Shown: one piece after another, positions 47,035-63,482 of the stretch
How positions within the stretch are numbered: position 1 is the first letter of the stretch
Layout of the letters: each line of letters opens with the position of its first letter
From: Guillardia theta CCMP2712
Lineage: Eukaryota > Protista > Cryptophyta
Assembly: GCF_000315625.1 (NCBI RefSeq)
Contig: NW_005434664.1
Coordinates: 398,345 to 462,344, forward strand
Length of the DNA stretch: 64,000 bases
Direction of reading: 5' to 3'
Program-made: the position numbers and the translations under genes
Notes under the pieces: generated by a model
Seen by the model: the letters and a program-made list of their open reading frames with translations, nothing else
Database searches by the model: none
Told to the model about the DNA's origin: nothing

Positions 47035-47455
47035 TCAGGCCCCGGCGGCCCGGCCGGGGCCCCGGACTGTACACCGTACGGTCACTGCCGTAGCAGGGCC
47101 GACCGCTGACGCGGCTGACCGTACCGTCCGACTCTCAGTCGGTCCGGGGACGGTCTGACTCGGAGGCCGGGCTCTCACCGCACTCAGTGGCGGCTGTCGG
47201 GGCCGGCCAAGTGCCACTCAGCTCGGAGGCAGTGATGCCCGGCCGTCACGTGCAGCACGCGGCCCCGGGCGGCCGGGCCGCACTGCTGCTGCCCGGCCGG
47301 GACTCCCAGCCTGACTCGGAGTGACCGGACCGTCGGACTCCGGGACATTCACTGTTCACACGAGTCAATTGACTAGTAACTACGGACGGAGGCTCCGAGG
47401 CTCCGGGGGGGGGCCGGAGGCCCGCGGCGGCCCGCCGGGCGGCCGGGCTCAGCCT
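47035..47455. repeat. GC/CpG-rich interspersed repeat-like tract at the retrotransposon insertion site
   Basis: Same word content as 22340-23150. Confidence 0.55.
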
Positions 47456-47945
47456 TATTGGAATCAATTCCTGACTCCTAGAGTCTGTGCACAGATGAAT
47501 GACTAGTAGAACAGCTCAACAGCTGACTGATAAGTCCAAAGACCAAGACTCACAGATGATGTGCGCACGAAGACACCAATGACTTTCACAGCCAACCAAA
47601 CACCTCAGATAACTCAGATCAACTTCCCAACAATCCCCAGCACTTTATTCCCAACACTCGTAGCAGCAAGACCAACCAAACAGCTTCCCTTCACACACCA
47701 CCGCCTTACTTCCACCACTGTACGAGTGCTGCCTCTTCGACAGCCGGCGCCTCTTGATTCCTCCGGCGCCGCCTCAGCTTCCCCAGGCTCCAACCAACCG
47801 GATCTTCTAAGTCACAGACTAAGCTCCAGCCCACTAGCTTGGACCTGCAGGCTTCACTTGGTTCACAACCTGATTAGACGCATCCCTTGAACTTATCGCG
47901 TCTGAAAGAACTTCTGAGAGGTTTGTCAGAACCTGAGTTCTTACA
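47456..47945 (-). repeat. 3' LTR (490 bp)
   Basis: Direct repeat of 56044-56533 at offset 8588; no differences seen by eye. Confidence 0.97.
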
Positions 47946-47955
47946 CCCTCCCTTT
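47946..47955 (-). other. Polypurine tract AAAGGGAGGG
   Basis: Directly abuts the TG start of the 3' LTR on the minus strand. Confidence 0.85.
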
Positions 47956-49419
47956 GTGAAGCAAGTCAGAAGTCTGCAACCTTCTCAGCTTGTCAAAATC
48001 ATCTGCTTGACAGCTAAGCAGCTGTCCCCTGCGATGTCCTCCTTTCCAACGATCGCTCTAGCTTCTTGCAGCGTTGTCAGCTGCTCCCATCACCTGACCA
48101 TCAACATCTTTCCCAAGCTGACTTCCATGCTGCTCTCCTCTCCAAGGTCATCTTGCTGCTACCACTCCATCAACCGTTCTGCACAGGCTCATCCCCCATC
48201 TTGCATGCCTCCTGCGCTCCTCCTTCGCTTCAAGTGTGCACCCTGGTGCACCTGCGTTTCGCCTCCTGTGACACCTGCACTCCTCCTCCGCTTGCGCTGC
48301 GGATGCAGTGCGGTCGCACCCCGCCAACAGTGCACCTGTGCTGCTCCTCCACCTGCGCTGCGGCTTCTCCCCACCATCGTAGGGCCTGCGCTGCTCCTCC
48401 AGCGCTTGCGCTTCAGCAGCACTCCTGCAGCACCTGCGCTGTCCTCCTCTAGCGCATCCTGATGCTCGTGCACTCGGGTTCCTCAGCTTGTACCATCCGC
48501 ATGCCACTAGAGACTCTCCTCATCCGCCTGCGCTGTCCGCATGCACCTGTGCTCCTCCTCACCTTCCATCATAAACTCTTCCCAGCTGCCTGCAGTGTCA
48601 GCTCAAGACTAAGTCCTGAACACATCTGCATCTTTCAAGTCAGACAGCTCCTCCTCCTCTTCAACCTGATCCTCATGATGGGATTGGTCATCATGTGACC
48701 TCTCTGAAGCTTGCGCATTGAGCAATGAAGACATCTCCACCCATTGATGATGCCAAGAATTTAGAATTCCAATCAAGCTCCAGAGATCAGGTTCAGAATT
48801 CTTGCAATGCATTGATTGATCTCTGATTGTTTTGAACACAATTTTCTCGTTTCTAATCTATGGGCCCTTTCTATCCTATCTACCCCGGGGATCATTGTTT
48901 TGCCAAGGCACAATCATTTTTGACGTCAGCGCTTTCATTTCAACCACATGACTTATCGATCTCGACTCATCCGTCATTTCTTTCTCAATTTTCATTTTTT
49001 GGCCATTCAATTTCATCGTTCACTACCGTCATGGGTTCCATAGATCAGGATGAGCGAGTTTCTAAGATACTAACCTAGAACAGATGTCTTGGTTGCAGCT
49101 AGCCACAGGCTTGAGGAAGACGTGTCTGTCTTTATCCTCCTTCCGATTCATCCGATTCCTTCACGTTCTCCATGAGAGTCTCCTCGGTGACATCACCCGA
49201 GACACCCTCCCTGAATCGGATAGAAGACGGAAGATAAAGCCTGGAAGCCACCGCAGCAGGATCGGTTAAATCTCCTTGTCGGAGACTAGAGCTCGGATCA
49301 CCGTCAATCACACACGGGGCATACAACTTTGGCGACTGACGGCATGGGAACAGAGTAGCACTGTCCCTGACAGAAGCGCAGAGAGCATGAAGCGCAGAGA
49401 GCATGACAGGCGAGCATCC

Positions 49420-52400
49420 TCAGAGCAGCATATCCGGTAAGGGGTCTCCGAAGAGAAATTCACCAAGGAGCCTCCACCGATTCAAAGGCAGAACTTTCGT
49501 CAGCAAATCGCCAGGCTGATAAGAAGTATGAATCTTTTCTGGATAGAGCTCGTCCTTTTCTACCAAATCAACAGCATACTTCGTTCGAATATCAATGTGT
49601 TTGAGTCGACTATAACTTCGCTTGTCCCACAAAAGCCTCAGACATGGTTCATTGTCGATTAACAAGAGAGTAGGACGAGTCTGCGTAAATCCCATCTGAC
49701 CCAAGAGATTTCTATAAAGCTTGACTAGTTTCGCGCATGTGGTGGCAGCATAAATTTCAGCTTCTGAAGAACTCAGGGCAACAACCTTCTGCATTTTTGA
49801 ACCGAAGACGACTACCCCACCATTCAGAACGATTCCATATCCGCTTTGACTCCGTCTCGTAATAATCTCGGTACCCCAACCAGCATCACTGAATGCAATC
49901 ATCTCATTGACAAAACACTCCTGGTGGTAAGATACTCCGTGACAATGGTATACGATCTGAACCTCCCGAGTAGTGTAAAGGTACTGTAGAAGATGAATTA
50001 AGGCATCCATATCGCACTGCCTAGGAGCCCGAGCAAAGCGACTAAGGACGCTCGTCGCGAATGCGATATCAACCCGCGTACAATTTGCCACGTAGAGAAT
50101 GGACCCCAGAAGACTCTGATAAGTGCGGACTTCCTTCTTGTTCAACAACTTACCCTCCAAGTGATAAGTCTTGAGATAGTGACCAGGTAATACCGTTTTG
50201 ACACCTCTGGCAACGATTTCAAAGCGTTCAACAATCTTTTCAATGAAATGCTGTTGTGACAAAGTTATCCGACCCTGATCGTCATTCTGTTCTATTTTAA
50301 TGCCCAAGAAGGTACCTGTTGCCTCACTCCCCGAAAAGTCGAATACTGTGTTGAGCTTCTCAAGAAACTCAATCTTAACTGCTTCAGTTTGAGAGACAAT
50401 GAGTAAGTCATCCACGAAGACAGTCAGAAGCAAGACGTCCCCCGCACAGTTGGAGTATCGGTAGATGATCTCATCATGTCCTATCCCACTTGCTCCCACC
50501 GTCTTCAACACCTGCGTGAACTTAAGATACCATCTCCTTGGTGCAATGCGAAGTCCATAGAGCGACTTCAAGACTTTGAGGAGGCACTCAGGAGGAAGAC
50601 TCATGATATCTGGAGGAATCAAATACACAGGAACCTCCAAGTCACCATACAAGAAAGCAGCAGAGATATCCCTGAATGTGATTCTCCAACGGTTGCCTGC
50701 CGCGATGCTCAGCAAGAGCCGGATATTGTCCAACGATGTAGTCGGTGCAAACAATTCTTCAGATGAAGGAAGTAAGTTGCCCATGATAACTAGCCGCCCC
50801 TTTCGTTTCAAGATCTTGCCCTTCAAGTCTCGTTTTGAAGCATACACCCACAAGGCGCGAGCAAGGACGGAATGATTTGACTCCCTGTTTTTCTGATCAC
50901 GCGTAACAACTTCCCAGACCCCACGACTTTCGATCTTCGCAATTTCCTCCTTTTCAGCCTGCTCCCAAAGATGCCGATCCGGACGACGTAACATCTCTGA
51001 CCTTGTCTTGGGATCTGGTAACTTGTCAAAACTACTTTCGTTCTCCACATCTCCTGCATCGCAAGCCGCTGTCATCGCGTAATCTGCCTGATTCTCAGGC
51101 ATTGCAGCTGGATTGTCACGGTCGGAAGACATCAGAGATAACAGGTCAGACGCCAGCTCCACCGCGTCCCATACGGGAGAGACCAACGCTAGATTCGCCA
51201 CAAGAAGACGCGTATCCCTGAAAGTAGGGTCCACATTAGCACTGACCTGTGGGGCAGATGACACAGGATCGACATGCTGTAAACGAGTTTTGTACATCTC
51301 ATCCCTCCATACTGGAACAAAACGCTGGGATGCTGGCTGAAGGCTTGTCCTGTCTTCCCCCCTGTCCCAAACATACAAGATCTCTTCAGATTCAGTCGAC
51401 CCCTGCACAATATGTGTAACTTGCAGATACTGTGGAAATTTCTTGTGCTGGGAAAGTACAACCACTTCAGGCGAACCCCCAACTGTAGCTTCGACAACAT
51501 CCATGATCCCATCCGCTGCACGATCAAGACAGGGTTTAAAAACTTTGGTATGGTCGGTCATATCACCAAAGACGTTCGGTGGAAAGCTACACGAGTAATA
51601 ATCTGCTAACATGCAGACCTCTGATATTGTCTCCCCACTTGTAAGCACCACCATTGCCTTCTGTTCGGTTTGTTCCAAAAACTTGATGTCAGGATCAGTG
51701 ACAGACCGTAACACCCAGTAATTGTCGAGAGTTGGGAAAACAATCCGCGCGAGAAACTTTCCCTCCTTGAAAACCATCTGCAAAATTTTGCCTTGCTCTA
51801 CTTGACCATTTACAAGAACTTCGACATCTCGATTGACATATTTGCTTTCCAAGACCCCTCGCTCCGCCTTGAAATCCCTCCGTGTTCTTCTGCCTGCTGG
51901 AGGAACTGGAGACATTGCACCGTCAGGCACATATTCGGTATCATCCCTCAACCGATGCTCTCCTGTATCCTCCCGTTGATCTCCAGATGTCAGGCTTTGG
52001 ACCGAGGAAGGTGGAAATTCCAATTGGAGGCGCTTGCTCGCGGAAACTTCACTTGCGTCAGGACCAGAGCCTCCCTGACAGTGTCGCTTCCTGCCAGACG
52101 TTGCAACTTCCTCAGGAATTTGCAATTCTGTTTCACTCGCATTTTCCGAGGAGTCTTCGTCGTCGTCAGATGCCACTGGTGCACAAGGTACTAGTTCCTT
52201 CAACAATTCATCCTCCACATTAGATGCCTGAAAACGTCGGCAACGTAATGGAAAATACATCTCGTCAAACGTAAGATTATTCGTATGGACGATTCTATCA
52301 TGCTCGATATCCCAAACCAAATACCCCACCTTATATCCAGAGAAAGCGCACGCGTTTCCCAGATTTAAACCATGAATTGCTGGATCATCCACCTTTGACG

Positions 52401-55400
52401 TGCGTAGTTCATTCTTGAAGAAGGTGCTGCACCCAAAAACCTTGAGCTTGCGATAGTCAAACTGCTCGGTTGTATATATCAAGTATGGTGAGGAATACCC
52501 TAGATTTCGTCCACTAGGCAGAATGTTGTACCGTAAAACTGCCTGCTGTACGGAATATTCCCATTTGCTCCGGGGTACTCCGCTCTGACGTAGTAACGTC
52601 CGATGAATGGACATTACGCTTCTGATTCCACGTTCAGCGAACGCATTGTAGACCTGAGAGTACTCTGGAATTTTGTCATGTCGTATCCCATGATCAACGA
52701 AAAAGCTCTCCAGCTCCACAGAGCTGAATTCTGAACCGTTGTCAGATACAATCTTCTGTACCTTAGGACGAGAGCTGTCACGATCCTCTTGTAACAGTAT
52801 TTCCTTGAGGATAGCAGCCGTCTGACTTTTCGTGCGCATAGGTCGTACTCGCACAAATCCGGAAAAGACGTCCACAATGATCAAGAAATATCTATAACCA
52901 CCAGGCTCGGATTGTACAATTATGTCTTTCAAATCCATATGCCAGACTTGATTGACCTCTGATGCCCGCTCCTGTCGGAAATCCGACTGTCGATGGATCG
53001 GCCGTGAGACGAACTTTGCTATTCTACAGGTGTGACAAGGAGATTTCTTTAGGCGCCTGTCGTACGTGATATACTTCACCGAATCGGCTAGTAATTTTTG
53101 AATCTTTGCTTCCAGATGTCCGAGCCGAAGGTGCCAGATGGCCGATTCTGTCGCAGCTGACAATCGGGACTGCTCACACATGTTCTCCTCTGGCTTGAGA
53201 GTCACTAAACTTGATGGACCCCCACTGTAATTATCACCATTGCTCGTACCAGCGCAAGAGGTTGTACTGTTGCACGCCACACTAATCTTCCCATCTCCCA
53301 TGAAAACCGTCTGCAAAAAGTACAACCTATCTCGTTGGAATACATCGATTTTCAATGCACCATCTTCTGAGCAAATGTAAGACTTTAGGGCACTCCTGGA
53401 GCCCCGTGATAACATGTGGTAGTCAGTCCCAAGAACATCATCCAAGCTAAGCAACGATATCGGGACAAGCGGGCATACGCGAACGTTGACAATAATCTCG
53501 TCCAGACAGGTGTTAGTTGTTGGACAAACCAGTTGCAGTCGTAATTTTCCAACCTTATCACAGACGACAGTACCTCCAGCGGTAAGCACCTGAAATTCAG
53601 GTCCAGCTTGGACATCAAACAACATAGACTCTTCCTTGACCATGGAGATATTAGCACCAGAGTCCAGCAAGAACGTATGGCCTCCAGCTCCTTCTTTCTC
53701 CTTTACCTGCAATGCAATTTCCTGCAATTCCTCGATGGTAGACGTGGAGTCGAGACCAAATGTGAAATTTGCTTTCCACGCTCCTTGCCTTCGATTAGCC
53801 TGTGACGCAGATTCCGTTGCATTCTGGGCCGATGAGCGTTCAAATGGATTTGCAGGAACAGAAGATTTCTTTTCTGACTCATTCCGCTGGCCGTCTGCGT
53901 CAGCCTTCTGCTGGTGACTGTGTGAACTTGAAGAAGCATTCGCTGCCATGCGTTGAGCTGCCTGAATCAACGCTTCCCCCATCTTGCGCGTGGTTTCAGC
54001 GTCCACAACTCCCCCTGACAACAAATTCTGCAAGACAGATGACGGTTGTTCACTTTCAACCCCTCGAGGGTTAAACCGCTGATTTTTGTAGTTGCCATTA
54101 TTTTGATTGTAGTTGTTGTTATTGTAGTTGTGGTTGTGATTGAAATTTCCATGACCTCGACCACCCTTCCAACCTTTGCCTCCATGTCCTTTCTGTCCAC
54201 CCTGACCTCTACCATAGCCTCCTTTGAAACTTCCTCTCCCTCCATTATGGTACCCATCCTGATTCCGCCTTCCCCTGCCACGGTAACCCGTATGGTTAGG
54301 TCCGCCGTCCCCCTCGCCTCCGCGGCCAGGGAAACCACCACGGTATGAGCTAGGGTCAAACGCCGCCTGATCTTGTCCCGCCCTACCAGGTCCTGAAGGA
54401 GCTTGACCAGAAGCCTGGTAAAACGTTGGGACGTTCCCGACCGGACCTTGGATAGGAAATGGATACATAGAGGGTTGACCTTGAGCATAGAAATTGAAAA
54501 ACGGGTCTTGGCTGGGAAACATGATACCTTGGGGATATGATGGAGGTATACTCCCACGAACTGGGTAATTACCATACCATTTGGGATCGACGTGAGAATT
54601 CTCTCCCGAATCCGCTTGACCACTATTTTCGCCTGACCCCGAGGATCTCTTCTTGCCCACTGCAACTTCTCCGACAGCCTGCGGTTCATTCGGTACCATC
54701 GGTTCACTTGCCACAGTGATATTCACCACTGACACGTCTCCCTTCGCATCCATCGCGGGCGTCACGGTCGTAGTCGTCTTGCTTCTAGTTTTTAAGATGC
54801 GCCCCCAGTGGAATATTTCGTCGAGAGAAATCTTTTCTGGTCTCATATTACTCTTCTTCCAATTTCGCAATTCTCTATTCAATGCCAATGACTGCAACGA
54901 TTCACAAGTCGATTCTTTACACCTGGCATGCAAGAGTTCAGCGATCTGGATCTCTAACGGCCCCATCCTTTGGTGTGCCCCCACAACACCTTGAATACTA
55001 TCCTTGAGATTCTTAAACAGTAGCTTGATTTTGTCCACGTTCCTCCAGAAGGCTTCTTCAGACTCAAGTGGCTGTTTCGCTAGCGCTCTGAGCTGATCTC
55101 TCCCTTCGTCCTCAGTAAGCTCGATAAGCTCAGCTCCACTTCGTTGCTTTACATTCCAGCGTACCAGTGCCAAAGTTTTGAAGAATGCCAAAGGATAGTT
55201 GCCTCCTCCTGACATCTGCCACTCTATGTCGAAATCATCCTTTAGCTTAACTCGAAAATAACTGTTCGTGCTGACAAGTACCTCAGCAATATCCTCAAAT
55301 AAGACTTCCACCTCCTGTCGATCAGCTGAGGATCTGAACAACCTCGGTGATATTTGGTACTTGTGTGGAGAGAAAACCACAGATGTATCGAGTGGATTAC

Positions 55401-55845
55401 CCATCTCTCCTTCCTCTGAAGCACCATCATTCACATCCTCGCTGGCTGCGATTGCCTCCTCGAATTTTCCTCGCAACTTCTTAAACTTCTCAAGAGCATC
55501 CTTGAATTTCTTCCCATTCTTCCAAATGTACCCAGCATGCAGAAACAACGCCGTGACCTGAATCTTCCACTCCAGCGAAGAGAATTTTTCAAGACCTTCT
55601 GGAGACGACTCCCACATTTCATGAAATTCTCCAACAAACGATCCAGTCTCGTCAATCGGAAACAAGTCCAACAGTTTTAAGAAACAAGCCCCAAGATTTG
55701 GACGAAAACGACTCATGGCACCTGAGAAAGGAAGGAACAGGTCCTCGAGTTTTTCCTTGGAGGTAACCTTCCCATGCTTCAGCTTGTCGACCTGAACATC
55801 ACCATGGCTTCGTTTCAACTCCTCTTGCAGATCTGGCATGCTCAT
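49420..55845 (-). CDS. Copia Gag-Pol polyprotein
   Basis: Protease LLDSGA; HHCC WHLRLGH..CHTC; integrase WHMDL / SDNGSEF / AERGIR; RT FLYG, KSLYGL, FVDDLL; RNase H FSDAGW, SSSEAE, IDN, DLLTK; first ATG at 55845. Confidence 0.97.
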   Translation of the reverse strand: MSMPDLQEELKRSHGDVQVDKLKHGKVTSKEKLEDLFLPFSGAMSRFRPNLGACFLKLLDLFPIDETGSFVGEFHEMWESSPEGLEKFSSLEWKIQVTALFLHAGYIWKNGKKFKDALEKFKKLRGKFEEAIAASEDVNDGASEEGEMGNPLDTSVVFSPHKYQISPRLFRSSADRQEVEVLFEDIAEVLVSTNSYFRVKLKDDFDIEWQMSGGGNYPLAFFKTLALVRWNVKQRSGAELIELTEDEGRDQLRALAKQPLESEEAFWRNVDKIKLLFKNLKDSIQGVVGAHQRMGPLEIQIAELLHARCKESTCESLQSLALNRELRNWKKSNMRPEKISLDEIFHWGRILKTRSKTTTTVTPAMDAKGDVSVVNITVASEPMVPNEPQAVGEVAVGKKRSSGSGENSGQADSGENSHVDPKWYGNYPVRGSIPPSYPQGIMFPSQDPFFNFYAQGQPSMYPFPIQGPVGNVPTFYQASGQAPSGPGRAGQDQAAFDPSSYRGGFPGRGGEGDGGPNHTGYRGRGRRNQDGYHNGGRGSFKGGYGRGQGGQKGHGGKGWKGGRGHGNFNHNHNYNNNNYNQNNGNYKNQRFNPRGVESEQPSSVLQNLLSGGVVDAETTRKMGEALIQAAQRMAANASSSSHSHQQKADADGQRNESEKKSSVPANPFERSSAQNATESASQANRRQGAWKANFTFGLDSTSTIEELQEIALQVKEKEGAGGHTFLLDSGANISMVKEESMLFDVQAGPEFQVLTAGGTVVCDKVGKLRLQLVCPTTNTCLDEIIVNVRVCPLVPISLLSLDDVLGTDYHMLSRGSRSALKSYICSEDGALKIDVFQRDRLYFLQTVFMGDGKISVACNSTTSCAGTSNGDNYSGGPSSLVTLKPEENMCEQSRLSAATESAIWHLRLGHLEAKIQKLLADSVKYITYDRRLKKSPCHTCRIAKFVSRPIHRQSDFRQERASEVNQVWHMDLKDIIVQSEPGGYRYFLIIVDVFSGFVRVRPMRTKSQTAAILKEILLQEDRDSSRPKVQKIVSDNGSEFSSVELESFFVDHGIRHDKIPEYSQVYNAFAERGIRSVMSIHRTLLRQSGVPRSKWEYSVQQAVLRYNILPSGRNLGYSSPYLIYTTEQFDYRKLKVFGCSTFFKNELRTSKVDDPAIHGLNLGNACAFSGYKVGYLVWDIEHDRIVHTNNLTFDEMYFPLRCRRFQASNVEDELLKELVPCAPVASDDDEDSSENASETELQIPEEVATSGRKRHCQGGSGPDASEVSASKRLQLEFPPSSVQSLTSGDQREDTGEHRLRDDTEYVPDGAMSPVPPAGRRTRRDFKAERGVLESKYVNRDVEVLVNGQVEQGKILQMVFKEGKFLARIVFPTLDNYWVLRSVTDPDIKFLEQTEQKAMVVLTSGETISEVCMLADYYSCSFPPNVFGDMTDHTKVFKPCLDRAADGIMDVVEATVGGSPEVVVLSQHKKFPQYLQVTHIVQGSTESEEILYVWDRGEDRTSLQPASQRFVPVWRDEMYKTRLQHVDPVSSAPQVSANVDPTFRDTRLLVANLALVSPVWDAVELASDLLSLMSSDRDNPAAMPENQADYAMTAACDAGDVENESSFDKLPDPKTRSEMLRRPDRHLWEQAEKEEIAKIESRGVWEVVTRDQKNRESNHSVLARALWVYASKRDLKGKILKRKGRLVIMGNLLPSSEELFAPTTSLDNIRLLLSIAAGNRWRITFRDISAAFLYGDLEVPVYLIPPDIMSLPPECLLKVLKSLYGLRIAPRRWYLKFTQVLKTVGASGIGHDEIIYRYSNCAGDVLLLTVFVDDLLIVSQTEAVKIEFLEKLNTVFDFSGSEATGTFLGIKIEQNDDQGRITLSQQHFIEKIVERFEIVARGVKTVLPGHYLKTYHLEGKLLNKKEVRTYQSLLGSILYVANCTRVDIAFATSVLSRFARAPRQCDMDALIHLLQYLYTTREVQIVYHCHGVSYHQECFVNEMIAFSDAGWGTEIITRRSQSGYGIVLNGGVVVFGSKMQKVVALSSSEAEIYAATTCAKLVKLYRNLLGQMGFTQTRPTLLLIDNEPCLRLLWDKRSYSRLKHIDIRTKYAVDLVEKDELYPEKIHTSYQPGDLLTKVLPLNRWRLLGEFLFGDPLPDMLL

Positions 55846-56043
55846 GATCGTCAACTTGGAGTTACCAATACCGTTCCAAAAAAATGAGTAACAGCGTACA
55901 GTATAACTTAAAGAGCCTTCAAACTCGTTGTCAATTCGACGCACAAAGACCAAGAGTCCTCAAACTCGTTGTCCTTGGAATCTTATCGTAGAGTCTTTTT
56001 GTATTCCTTTGTTCGCGAATACAAAAAGAAAATTTTCTTTTTG

Positions 56044-56533
56044 TATTGGAATCAATTCCTGACTCCTAGAGTCTGTGCACAGATGAATGACTAGTAGAAC
56101 AGCTCAACAGCTGACTGATAAGTCCAAAGACCAAGACTCACAGATGATGTGCGCACGAAGACACCAATGACTTTCACAGCCAACCAAACACCTCAGATAA
56201 CTCAGATCAACTTCCCAACAATCCCCAGCACTTTATTCCCAACACTCGTAGCAGCAAGACCAACCAAACAGCTTCCCTTCACACACCACCGCCTTACTTC
56301 CACCACTGTACGAGTGCTGCCTCTTCGACAGCCGGCGCCTCTTGATTCCTCCGGCGCCGCCTCAGCTTCCCCAGGCTCCAACCAACCGGATCTTCTAAGT
56401 CACAGACTAAGCTCCAGCCCACTAGCTTGGACCTGCAGGCTTCACTTGGTTCACAACCTGATTAGACGCATCCCTTGAACTTATCGCGTCTGAAAGAACT
56501 TCTGAGAGGTTTGTCAGAACCTGAGTTCTTACA
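56044..56533 (-). repeat. 5' LTR (490 bp)
   Basis: Begins TGTAAG and ends CCAATA on the minus strand. Confidence 0.97.
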
Positions 56534-56787
56534 AGCCTTTAACTGAGAGATCACTTAACTACCGTGTACTAGCCCGGCGTGGTGGCCCCGCCATGTGAAA
56601 TCCGATGGGCCACTGACAGTCACGCCTTGATACGACTCTTTTGTTCCAGTGTGCCTCGTGACTCAGCGCAAACACACGTCGACTCAAGTCATGATGGCAG
56701 TCAATTGTCCACGTCGAAGCTAGTCTCAGTCAGTCTTGACGCCCAGTTTACCTGCAGTGAAAGTTCTCGAACTTGGTTAAGCCTGGC

Positions 56788-59839: not shown

Positions 59840-62800
59840 ATGGCGCCCCCCAAGTTGGTGCGACCATCGACGGCAGGGACGGGGTTGCAGCCGAAACCTC
59901 CTCCCAGGTGAGATGCAGAGCCTTCACCTCCTTGCCTCTCTGCTCCTCTCCACACGCTCTCCTGATGCCTCAGTCCTGCACGTCATGCCCAAAAGATTTG
60001 AATCACCAGTCATCTCTGATCCAAAGTCATGCAGGGGGAACAGCAAGACCAGGAGGCCAAGAACGTCAAGGGAAGATCGTTTCTCAAAGAGCCCCAGCAT
60101 GAATTCAAATGAAGGGGAAAATCAAGACGAGACCCTCCAAATTCAGTCAACGCCCAGTGGGAAGAAGTACATCTTTCGTTTGAACAACGTGGCCATGGTG
60201 AACATTGATGAGAATGAAGTGCTAGAAGTAAGCTCAGATGAGGTGTGTGTACATTGTATTTCTTATCTGTCTAAGATACATCTCAGGATGATGGAGAATA
60301 CAATCATTTTGGCAATCGGGGAGGAAAGATAAACTCACCGAATGACGACCTCGGTTTCAACTTCTCGACCGACGAGATTCTGAAACTTGCGAATGCCATG
60401 ACGAATGTTGGAGGCATCCTGCAATTCGATGAGATTGAAAGTCCTGTAGAAGCGGGGAAGGATAACAGTACCACAGACAGCAGCTCATCAAAATCAAGCT
60501 CAGAATCTCACAAAGGTGAGATGGAGACGATGATGCTTTCTCGCGCTGCGAGAATGGATGCAGAGCCTGAACTATTCGTACACCATTCAATCGAGTTTTC
60601 TCACGATGACTCTCGCCATGAGCACACTGCCAGTGTCAGAGATCCAGGCAGCAGCGATCTTCAAGCGCCAAATCAGTCAGAGGAAGTTGTACTGCATAAG
60701 ATGTCAAGACCAAACCTTCACAAGCCCGAAAGTGAAACATTCGAACAAAGAGCGTCAATACATGAAAGAGTCAATGGGAGAACTGGAAGGAGGGAAAAGA
60801 GCGGTATTGAAGAATACAAACACGGCACGCGGCTAGAAAATAAGACAAAGACTCAGCCGATTCACAGCGATTCTTTTCAATCGTCTAAACAGTCAAGCTC
60901 ACAAATAACGACTAATCAACACATTGTGACCACGACAAAGCGATCGCAAGGAGTCAGCGCATTAAGGGAAAATTCAAAGCAAGTGCCAACTGTACACCTG
61001 CAGGGTAAAGAGGATGGACTGGCAGGCAACGATTATTACGCAGAAAGCAGATTGGACAACAAATCAACGCACAAAGCATCATTTCAGGAGCTATACCACA
61101 GCAAAACTGACCAAGATAAGATGTCGATCCAAGAAAAACAAAATGAAAACAGAAAGCTCAAGGAACAACAGATGTATGAATCAAATTACAATGGAAAAGT
61201 GAAGGCTGGAGAGATGAGAGAGGAGGAAGAGCTGGAAGACCCGCCCGCAGCTCACACTGACTCAACGCCCGTTGCCAGGCAGGCCCCTCATGTCGGGGAG
61301 CGGGAAGCTCAGGTGCACGAGGCCTCAGCGGCAGACGACGCGCGTGAGGGCGACGATGAGCCCGGATTGACCCGTGAGGACCACGCGACAGGCTTGAGGG
61401 GGGAGGGCTCGGCGCATCAGATCACGCAAGACGAGGAGGCAAAGGCTGACGACAAGACGCAGAAAGCAGATGTAGAGGAGCAAGCATCGCCGAGGCAGGA
61501 GGCGTCAGCAGGAGAAGGCGAGTTGAGGGACGCGAGTATCGCTGAGCACTCGAGGTATCCGCCTCAGGCAGTGGACCTCCTGGCAGCTGCACATGGAGGG
61601 ATTTCCGACCACCCCGCTTCTCGAGAGACCCCGGCGACAAGCGAGCAAGCTACCGATGCGCTGCAGGTCAAGGCAGGCAAGCAAACTAAGAAGCCAAAGC
61701 AGCCCAAGGCTAAGCCAGCAGCTGGTGAAGTCAAGGCTGGAGAGATGAGAGAGGAGGAAGAGCTGGAAGACCCGCCCGCAGCTCACACTGACTCAACGCC
61801 CGTTGCCAGGCAGGCCCCTCATGTCGGGGAGCGGGAAGCTCAGGTGCACGAGGCCTCAGCGGCAGACGACGCGCGTGAGGGCGACGATGAGCCCGGATTG
61901 ACCCGTGAGGACCACGCGACAGGCTTGAGGGGGGAGGGCTCGGCGCATCAGATCACGCAAGACGAGGAGGCAAAGGCTGACGACAAGACGCAGAAAGCAG
62001 ATGTAGAGGAGCAAGCATCGCCGAGGCAGGAGGCGTCAGCAGGAGAAGGCGAGTTGAGGGACGCGAGTATCGCTGAGCACTCGAGGTATCCGCCTCAGGC
62101 AGTGGACCTCCTGGCAGCTGCACATGGAGGGATTTCCGACCACCCCGCTTCTCGAGAGACCCCGGCGACAAGCGAGCAAGCTACCGATGCGCTGCAGGTC
62201 AAGGCAGGCAAGCAAACTAAGAAGCCAAAGCAGCCCAAGGCTAAGCCAGCAGCTGGTGAAGTCAAGGCTGGAGAGATGAGAGAGGAGGAAGAGCTGGAAG
62301 ACCCGCCCGCAGCTCACACTGACTCAACGCCCGTTGCCAGGCAGGCCCCTCATGTCGGGGAGCGGGAAGCTCAGGTGCACGAGGCCTCAGCGGCAGACGA
62401 CGCGCGTGAGGGCGACGATGAGCCCGGATTGACCCGTGAGGACCACGCGACAGGCTTGAGGGGGGAGGGCTCGGCGCATCAGATCACGCAAGACGAGGAG
62501 GCAAAGGCTGACGACAAGACGCAGAAAGCAGATGTAGAGGAGCAAGCATCGCCGAGGCAGAGGCGTCAGCAGGAGAAGCGAGTTGAGGGACGCGAGTATC
62601 GCTGAGCACTCGAGGTATCCGCTCAGGCAGTGGACCTCCTGGCAGCTGCACATGGAGGGATTTCCGACCACCCCCGCTTCTCGAGAGACCCCGGCGACAA
62701 GCGAGCAAGCTACCGATGCGCTGCAGGTCAAGGCAGGCAAGCAAACTAAGAAGCCAAAGCAGCCCAAGGCTAAGCCAGCAGCTGGTGAAGTCAAGGCTGG

Positions 62801-62954
62801 AGAGATGAGAGAGGAGGAAGAGCTGGAAGACCCGCCCGCAGCTCACACTGACTCAACGCCCGTTGCCAGGCAGGCCCCTCATGTCGGGGAGCGGGAAGCT
62901 CAGGTGCACGAGGCCTCAGCGGCAGACGACGCGCGTGAGCATGAATGTCAGTAA
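59840..62954 (+). CDS. Large, probably disordered acidic protein with 177-aa tandem repeats
   Basis: Exons MAPPKLVRP / ...EVSSDE / DDGEYNHF... join the 60398 ORF; apparent frameshifts in the third repeat. Confidence 0.65.
61202..62939 (+). repeat. 531-bp coding tandem repeat, about 3.3 copies
   Basis: Unit starts at 61202, 61733, 62264 and 62793. Confidence 0.95.
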
Positions 62955-63011
62955 GGCGGCAGCTCACTGGCGAAACCTTGCTCAGCCTCCTCCTCTCAGT
63001 CTTTCCTTCTC

Positions 63012-63482
63012 TCACTCGTTGTTCATGGAGTTCTCTTGCAAGTCCTTCTGTTGTTTGTCGAAGTCCTCGAGCTCTTTCCGTTGCTTCTCCTTCAGATTCT
63101 CCTCCAACGTCTTGATCTCTTTCGCCAGCGCCTTCTTCGCGTTCTTCTTCTCCAGCGTCCCCGCGCCCATGGCCTTCTTGTGGCTCTTCATCGAGTCCAG
63201 CTGGCAGCGCAGAGCTCGCCATTCCTTCTTGTGCCTCTGCAGGATCTTGCCGCGAGTCATGCCCTCCCCCTGCTCCTCTTCTCCCCCGGACCCCCCCTGC
63301 TCTTGCGTCCTCGCCTCTGCCGTCTCTTCCACTGTCGGCTCTCCGTCTTGCATCGCTTCCCCTTCCCTCAGCGTGTTGGCTGTAGACTTTTCTAGCATGT
63401 TGCATAAGTCGGTGATCCTGGTGGTGTCGCGGCCATAAGGGCTGAAGCGACTTGCTCCTCCCTTCTTCTTTGTCTTGCCCAT
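63012..63482 (-). CDS. Small basic coiled-coil protein resembling the N-terminus of OTUD6/Otu2
   Basis: MTRGKILQRHKKEWRALR...KKALAKEIKTLEENLKEKQRKELEDF; no OTU catalytic domain follows. Confidence 0.55.
   Translation of the reverse strand: MGKTKKKGGASRFSPYGRDTTRITDLCNMLEKSTANTLREGEAMQDGEPTVEETAEARTQEQGGSGGEEEQGEGMTRGKILQRHKKEWRALRCQLDSMKSHKKAMGAGTLEKKNAKKALAKEIKTLEENLKEKQRKELEDFDKQQKDLQENSMNNE

Follow-up and report, generated by a model that had tools for sequence, protein, structure and literature searches.

A palindrome in place of the primer-binding site as a candidate initiation module in a Ty1/copia lineage of Guillardia theta

The first primer used by retroelements with long terminal repeats (LTRs) is held to be a settled matter, being the 3' end of a tRNA, a half tRNA, or a fold-back of the transcript as in Tf1. 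In the latter, a Ty3/gypsy element of Schizosaccharomyces pombe, the 5' end of the transcript, about 11 nt long and released by a cut of RNase H, serves as primer. Half-tRNA-iMet priming, found in elements of the copia, Ty5 and Osser type, relies on an endonucleolytic cut in a structured RNA which makes the primer end. Perfect palindromes in or near the primer-binding site (PBS) are dimerisation sites in some retroviruses. The present work deals with a Ty1/copia element of the cryptophyte Guillardia theta CCMP2712 which carries a perfect palindrome in the place of the PBS. It is located in a stretch of 64,000 nucleotides (RefSeq assembly GCF_000315625.1, contig NW_005434664.1, positions 398,345 to 462,344 of the forward strand), which is called the window in the following and to which the coordinates refer.

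The closest described system is what is termed the 'Conserved Hairpin Site' (CHS) in GalEa copia elements of fungi, which have no PBS and for which a mechanism was not established (Donnart et al. 2017, BMC Genomics 18:410, PMC5445492). Its first part, CHSeq1, consists of 9 bp (CTGATCAGT or CTAATTAGT) and turns into a palindrome when extended by the last A of the LTR. The second part, CHSeq2, lies 6–41 bp downstream according to text and Additional file 4 and has the sequence of CHSeq1 in reverse complement (PMC5445492). CHSeq2 is therefore also a near-direct repeat of the junction. The fungal site has no complement in U5 or R, it is better conserved than the LTRs, an 'extended CHS' is common to families of one genome, and metazoan relatives of GalEa keep a tRNA-Met site (PMC5445492). 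Self-priming in the manner of Tf1 has been predicted for the TAR copia elements of plants, as it has for the plant Tcn1 lineage (PMC6317226). The novelty of the locus treated here had been rated too highly in its preliminary description, as the fungal hairpin of the same design was already published. A full-text literature search yielded no description of such a junction palindrome in cryptophytes.

The element is a complete LTR retrotransposon, which occupies positions 47456–56533 (9078 bp) of the minus strand. On the element strand its 5' LTR (56044–56533, minus strand, 490 bp, TGTAAG...CCAATA) ends in ...GATTCCAATA, in a longer stretch ...TTCCAATA, and runs into CAAAAAGAAAATTTTCTTTTTGTATT. 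At this junction of U5 and leader, in the place of the PBS, lies a perfect palindrome of 30 nt (56018–56047, minus strand), the two arms of which (56018–56032 and 56033–56047, 15 nt each) are 100% complementary with a spacer of 0 nt. Arm A (AATACAAAAAGAAAA, in RNA AAUACAAAAAGAAAA; 56033–56047, minus strand) comprises the last 4 nt of U5 and 11 nt in the primer-binding place, and arm A' (TTTTCTTTTTGTATT, in RNA UUUUCUUUUUGUAUU; 56018–56032, minus strand) is the candidate for an element-encoded primer strand. A third copy of the word, A2 (GAATACAAAAAGA, in RNA GAAUACAAAAAGA; 55994–56006, minus strand), is a direct repeat of the junction between the U5 end and the PBS place, and an alternative partner of A'. 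It pairs with A' plus the adjoining C, the segments 55994–56006 and 56017–56029 being 100% complementary over 13 nt and 10 nt apart. The palindrome over the last four LTR bases and the alternative 13-bp stem had both been claimed before and were found at exactly these positions. Just one perfect palindrome with arms of at least 9 nt is contained in the window; block-shuffled windows had 0.46 on average and none with arms near 15 nt. In the 9078-nt RNA of the element, A' alone is complementary to arm A over at least 8 nt.

The border of the 5' LTR could be fixed exactly. It is 100% identical to the 3' LTR (47456–47945, minus strand, 490 bp), and the element is flanked by a target site duplication (TSD) AGCCT at 47451–47455 and 56534–56538, from which it follows that the palindrome truly reaches 4 nt (AATA) into U5. 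In every other resolvable copy of the family of this element (fam1) the end ...CCAATA is likewise found together with a 5-bp TSD. A variable U5 end (CCAATA or CCAATAC) left by an imprecise primer cut was considered on account of a C after 7 of 14 3' LTRs, and was rejected since this C is part of the 5-bp TSD in every resolvable case.

None of the known primer sites could be detected next to the LTR. Neither a TGG-type PBS nor a word of the GGTTATG type follows it, the sequence reading CAAAAAGAAAA..., and the half-tRNA-iMet PBS GGTTATG(A/G)GCC, which complements the anticodon arm of the initiator tRNA-Met, is absent from the fam1 element; it is present, as positive control, in C46, C29/C70 and C375, which are copia families of this genome. 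The tRNA set for comparison consisted of 30 distinct nuclear sequences from an RF00005 search in which 63 of about 1940 candidates were scored. With CCA added, the longest contiguous stretch over which one of them complements the 20 nt following the LTR was 6 nt in fam1, 5 nt in fam2 and 6 nt in fam3, the latter two being the sister families described below. The 12-mer complementary to positions +1 to +12 occurs 53 times in the searched genome (87.1 Mb in 669 contigs), namely 24 times in both arms of 12 element copies and 29 times elsewhere, and ARAGORN gave 0 tRNA genes at the 29 non-element occurrences. The earlier statement that both types of PBS are lacking is borne out by these data, and a host tRNA complementary to at least 10 nt next to the LTR was not encountered among the sampled tRNAs.

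The evidence which bears most directly on the pairing partner comes from the comparison with two sister families, which were defined by searches with the gag N-terminus and the reverse transcriptase (RT) domain. Their LTR ends were set from 3' LTRs, in the case of fam2 additionally from the TSD CTCCC. In fam1 (RT and gag identity about 100%), where ...CCAATA is followed by CAAAAAGAAAATTTTCTTTTTGTATT, the palindrome of 30 nt with 4 LTR bases inside is perfect at 12 of 13 5' junctions, and one older copy has two substitutions; GAATACAAAAAGA follows 10 nt after A' with 13 perfect pairs. In fam2 (RT 64–65%, gag 33% identity to fam1) the junction reads ...GATTA followed by CAAAGAGAAAATTTTCTCTTTGT. 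Here a palindrome of 24 nt which includes 1 LTR base is present in 13 of 13 copies, with A2 (GAACAAAGAG) located about 57 nt after A' and forming 10 perfect pairs. For fam3 (RT 50–52%, gag 24%) the junction is ...ACATA followed by TTCTAAAAATTTTAGAATAT, with a palindrome of 23 nt around an odd central base including 3 LTR bases (8 of 8 copies), and A2 (GATATTCTA) forms 9 perfect pairs 8 nt after A'.

Pairs were counted by hand from the centre of the stem, as an ungapped MAFFT alignment put the odd-centred stem of fam3 out of register. All 38 stem pairs (15 in fam1, 12 in fam2 and 11 in fam3) are of the Watson-Crick type, with no G:U pair. At six of the eleven stem positions shared by the three families (positions 5, 6, 7, 8, 10, and 11) both sides have changed, so that compensatory changes are indeed present in the relatives, and the stem core common to all three is only AAAAUUUU. 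In each family A2 has changed in step with A and A', repeating the last 4, 1, and 3 nt of U5 and the first 8, 7, and 5 nt beyond it in fam1, fam2, and fam3, respectively. The sole complement of A which co-varies between the families is A'. The stretch adjoining U5 is a different word in each case (CAAAAAGAAAA, CAAAGAGAAAA, TTCTAAAAA), for which each family keeps a perfect internal complement. Since one host RNA cannot match all three words, the covariation favours an element-encoded pairing partner over a host tRNA. A subfamily on a metagenome contig (L122 1-480, ENA ERZ930071) with 93% protein identity keeps this palindrome; its spacer is longer and of another sequence, and the A2 word occurs twice in tandem. 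Freshwater, aquatic, and runoff metagenome runs hold 51–64% of the words of the element.

Conservation in fam3 extends beyond the palindrome. A stretch of 162 nt, reaching from the palindrome to the start codon of gag, is 98–99% identical between copies which have LTRs of 40–57% identity or gag starts of 54% identity. This sameness of the leader may be due to recombination breakpoints at both of its borders or to very strong constraint or selection. The copies are mosaics (L093, L104–L106, L118–L121), with a divergent LTR in C44 and C2 and a divergent gag start in C44 and C146b. An inversion of the fam3 centre (AAAAATTTT versus AAAATTTTT) was considered as a footprint of hairpin copying and was rejected, because the variant occurs in two of eight copies which share two other derived sites and is explained by a single event. 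Another candidate, C158, proved to be a rearranged fam3 copy and not a fourth hairpin family. The TSDs of several 5' and 3' LTRs sharing a contig do not match (L005/L015/L016, L028/L026, L004/L011, L008/L014), and matching TSDs are found on different contigs (C60 with C293, C198 with C100, C384 with C309, C228 with C136 or C60), an arrangement suggestive of either inter-element recombination or assembly misjoins at the fam1 repeat.

More distant copia families of the same genome, with an RT identity of 30–33% to fam1, have half-tRNA-iMet junctions of the type CA followed by GGTTATGAGCCTCG. In C46 ...CCATC is followed by GGTTATGAGCCTCG, in C70 the LTR TGATG...GCATCA by GGTTATGAGCCTCGCG, and in C375 ...CACATCA by GGTTAGAGCCTCGCG; the LTRs thus end in CA in C29/C70 (TG...CA) and C375, and in ...CCATC in C46. 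Sister copies with a normal PBS were not found, such sites being restricted to these distant families. As they keep the half-tRNA-iMet site and TG...CA ends, the palindrome appears from sequence comparison to be a derived state, confined to one lineage, which replaced the half-tRNA site, and half-tRNA-iMet priming is likely to be the ancestral state. About 60 sites of the half-tRNA type are contained in the genome. Exact GAGGCTCATAACCTC words number four, and these are probably the anticodon arm of the initiator tRNA-Met; the pattern GGCTCATAACCC matched retroelement PBS sites only and no tRNAs. A large protein search for relatives outside Guillardia returned generic copia elements only (28–34% identity). 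Junctions were inspected for three long polyproteins among them, one having a classic TGGTAGCAGAGC site and two having no recognisable site.

Two further loci concern the half-tRNA type. At G000:C70:297000-309500 (L078, L115) a copia element of this type (TGATG...GCATCA followed by GGTTATGAGCC, TSD CCAGT) is inserted in a fam1-like relic, the LTR of which is 81% identical to fam1 over 127 nt and the leader of which, CAAAAAGAAAATTTTTG, lacks 5 nt of the palindrome and still folds into a hairpin of 6 bp. The locus was considered as a sister with a degenerate palindrome, and this was rejected since what is seen is a relic LTR and leader interrupted by the inserted element. Arrays of the half-tRNA PBS word (CAGGTTATGAGCCTC, other strand), mostly about 300–320 bp apart, are found at G000:C170:22900-37300 and 79400-81500 and may be tandem miniature copia-derived elements.

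It is proposed, with confidence evenly balanced against doubt, that the palindrome and the downstream repeat form the module for initiation of reverse transcription in this Guillardia-specific Ty1/copia lineage, in which a self-encoded partner has taken the place of the half-tRNA-iMet site. As U5 ends exactly at ...CCAATA, the 3' end of the primer must pair opposite the C at +1, that is, inside arm A. The primer strand would be A' of the element's own RNA, which might fold back in cis, although supply in trans by a second packaged genome is more plausible. Donation in trans is favoured because a cut in a cis hairpin splits the genome in two, and because a loop-less perfect palindrome can form a 30-bp intermolecular duplex; across such a duplex the palindrome would be dimer linkage and PBS at the same time. 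The 3'-OH would arise where A' is cut endonucleolytically opposite +1, following ...CUUUUUG between 56022 and 56021 of the minus strand in fam1, ...CUCUUUG in fam2, and ...UUUUAGAA in fam3, and by analogy to Tf1 the RNase H of the element itself might make this cut. A paired primer of 11 nt would be left in fam1 and fam2 and one of 8–9 nt in fam3, and in fam1 priming would join element RNA ending in ...CUUUUUG to minus-strand DNA starting with TATTGGAATC. The hairpin of A' and A2 could be the resting state of the monomer, with A open and A' masked until dimerisation or packaging.

Folding predictions are compatible with such a switch between two states. For 181 nt around the junction the minimum free energy structure contains the A:A' hairpin (−48.3 kcal/mol) and the centroid structure contains A':A2 (−45.7 kcal/mol), with z = −2.6 compared to shuffled sequences. 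In shorter constructs of fam1 and fam2 the predicted monomer of minimum free energy pairs A' with A2 and leaves A single-stranded, and the fold of fam3 prefers the A:A' hairpin. The predicted dimer of fam1 is the 30-bp intermolecular duplex of the palindrome, at −56.0 versus 2 × −22.9 kcal/mol, and the dimer should be considered as a third state. The two-state switch suggested in the preliminary description is therefore supported by two alternative predicted states and is plausible in silico, while a part of A2 in it is conjecture. As for the tRNA-independent self-priming by a hairpin suggested there, the absence of a tRNA-type site and the covariation of the partner in two sister families speak in its favour; self-priming itself is still inferred, priming in trans within a dimer is at least as likely, and a role in dimerisation or packaging is possible.

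The latter role leads to a different explanation, in which the palindrome is mainly a signal for genome dimerisation or packaging, similar to a dimerisation initiation site (DIS), that covers the PBS, and a host RNA, for example a small RNA of another class than tRNA, a tRNA of the organelles or the nucleomorph, or a piece of a tRNA, pairs with arm A as primer. It would profit from the fact that a loop-less perfect palindrome suits intermolecular pairing best, from the higher stability predicted for the dimer as compared to two monomers, and from the conservation of the whole fam3 leader, and the inventory of tRNAs and small RNAs is incomplete. The host primer would, however, need to be a different one for each of the three words adjoining U5, each of which has its perfect internal complement, and the 12-mer complement is part of no tRNA, the sampled cytosolic tRNAs pairing over 6 nt at most. 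This explanation is considered unlikely.

Little probability is also given to a start with no primer paired to +1 beforehand, where the hairpin positions the RT and synthesis begins de novo or from a short oligonucleotide which is made on A2 and moved to the identical word at U5 and PBS. Primer translocation between epsilon and DR1 in hepadnaviruses offers an analogy. A2 directly repeats the junction in all three families, as fungal CHSeq2 nearly does for the last A of the LTR plus CHSeq1, but a DNA primer made on A2 would lengthen the LTR past ...CCAATA, which is excluded by the TSD analysis, and A' and A2 lie at variable distances from each other (10, about 57, and 8 nt). To our knowledge no LTR retroelement starts in this way. 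Quite improbable as well is an action of the palindrome as DNA, for example as binding site of a dimeric protein or as an aid in plus-strand transfer, unrelated to the choice of the primer. Pairing which is of the Watson-Crick type throughout, without G:U, fits a constraint on DNA or on both strands, or copying from arm to arm; yet this explanation leaves the primer unaccounted for although the palindrome fills the sole possible position of a PBS, and it has no role for the co-varying A2 and the predicted RNA switch. A mechanism of the Tf1/sushi type, in which the first bases of the transcript at the start of R fold back on the PBS and are cut off as primer, is the only self-priming mode established experimentally and the one predicted for the TAR elements, but is hardly credible here, as the 490-bp LTR contains no complement of +1 to +22 longer than 6 nt.

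Several points weigh against the proposed priming by A' as well. It is deduced from sequence, and the role of A2 is conjectural. Cleavage in cis parts the coding region from R-U5, so that a model in cis works only with a second template. As the palindrome includes 4, 1, and 3 bases of U5 in the three families, the supposed cut lies at varying distances from the stem base. Three families, all from one genome, enter the comparison, and conservation within fam1 is uninformative since its copies are young. Dimerisation palindromes of retroviruses imply that conservation alone proves no priming. Furthermore, the tRNA set is incomplete, with organellar and nucleomorph tRNAs and other small RNAs outside the sample.

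The remaining parts of the element are those of a Ty1/copia (Pseudoviridae) retrotransposon. The assignment follows from the domain order, integrase preceding RT, and from the RVT_2 type of the RT. The direct LTRs, the 5-bp TSD and the polypurine tract in front of the 3' LTR are hallmarks of the group; the LTR ends, in contrast, are TG...TA in fam1, fam2, and fam3 and not the canonical TG...CA. The polypurine tract AAAGGGAGGG (47946–47955, minus strand) abuts the 3' LTR, and the junction of aaagggaggg to TGTAAG is present in every 3' LTR copy. A single open frame for gag-pol (49420–55845, minus strand) encodes 2142 amino acids from an ATG at 55845, with protease (DSGA), integrase, RT, and RNase H. 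In the numbering of the 2177-amino-acid open frame starting at 55953, Pfam detected gag_pre-integrs (932–980), rve (998–1096), SH3_retrovirus (1164–1235), and RVT_2 (1700–1915), the DSGA motif being located upstream of these domains. No CCHC zinc knuckle is found in gag, which has a Gly/Arg-rich (RGG-like) and then an Asn-rich low-complexity stretch at 54040–54350 (about residues 500–600 of gag-pol) that may be a nucleic-acid chaperone region. Between the stop codon of gag-pol and the polypurine tract lie about 1.47 kb of non-coding sequence (47946–49419), in which a 48-nt direct repeat is found at 48304–48401. An open frame of 191 amino acids (47887–48462) runs on the strand opposite to the element. 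Apart from the element, the window contains, at 61192–63082, a unit of about 531 bp in four tandem copies. Three of them are 99–100% identical over the 300 nt that were compared, the fourth being 64% identical.

The identical LTRs, the intact TSD and the one open frame of 2142 amino acids show that the element is young and intact, as had been claimed, and the identical LTRs and intact open reading frames that the fam1 family was recently active. Expression data were available as assembled contigs of 24 public runs. The family occurs in contigs of runs guessed to be RNA from four studies, and one contig of 1708 nt reads from the polypurine tract through LTR and leader into gag without genomic flank, which fits transcripts or circles with the LTR in a single context. 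The breaks of contigs at 56018 and 56047 are an artefact of k-mer assemblers at the 30-nt palindrome, without biological significance.

The fungal GalEa hairpin has been an unexplained exception since 2017, and the cryptophyte copia lineage provides a second and probably independent system. It comprises three families which co-vary and intact copies with recent activity, and relatives primed by tRNA in the same genome can serve as controls. Its long stems ease the search for the predicted intermediates, namely A' cut opposite +1 and RNA of the element attached to strong-stop DNA. Due to the TG...TA ends and the missing tRNA match, programs which find LTR elements by their PBS will miss such families or assign wrong borders to them. 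The more far-reaching proposal is put forward tentatively, and doubts about it prevail: that this is a second, independently evolved tRNA-free start of reverse transcription in Ty1/copia, in which the palindrome is both dimer linkage and PBS, the partner genome in the particle gives the primer in trans after being cut, and A2 acts as the gate of the switch. If this were true and the fungal GalEa hairpin worked alike, priming in LTR retroelements would have a third general mode, next to tRNAs and the 5'-end self-priming of Tf1.

How the module relates to the known systems can be summarised as follows. With the tRNA-independent Tf1 it would share a primer which is an internally cut piece of the element's own RNA, paired over about 11 nt in fam1 and fam2; unlike in Tf1, the LTR has no complement to the PBS place and the only partner lies immediately downstream. 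Copia elements with half-tRNA-iMet priming belong to the same superfamily and likewise need a cut in a structured RNA, whereas fam1 has no word of the GGTTATG type and the partner is not a tRNA. Like the DIS and PAL sites of retroviruses and Ty1, the palindrome is a self-complementary sequence of the 5' leader able to pair two genomes, but those sites coexist with a separate tRNA PBS and the Guillardia palindrome is the sole sequence at the PBS position. The resemblance to the fungal GalEa CHS comprises the lack of a tRNA PBS, a palindrome at the LTR end which includes the last base or bases of the LTR, a second copy downstream (at 10, about 57, and 8 nt in fam1, fam2, and fam3) able to pair with the first, the lack of a Tf1-type complement in the LTR, a conservation better than that of the LTRs, the occurrence in several families of a single genome, and an ordinary site of the tRNA-Met type in relatives. 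By this analogy the module would be CHS-like in function. In contrast to the fungal palindrome of 10 nt with 1 LTR base, that of Guillardia measures 23–30 nt with arms of 11–15 nt and 1–4 LTR bases; fam1 and fam2 are perfectly paired, without the conserved A/A mismatch of the fungal site, and fam3 deviates by no more than an odd central base; the LTRs are TG...TA instead of TGT...CA, and the host is a cryptophyte. The fungal motifs KSRLVI, QTDD, and CQPEA and a gag zinc finger C2C4C4H (Additional file 5, PMC5445492) are opposed by KGRLVI, FVDD, TRVDI, and GDLLTK without a zinc knuckle in Guillardia. Judged by these motifs and not by a tree, the Guillardia lineage stands outside the fungal GalEa clade, and since the protein motifs differ, an origin of its hairpin independent of the fungal one is likely.

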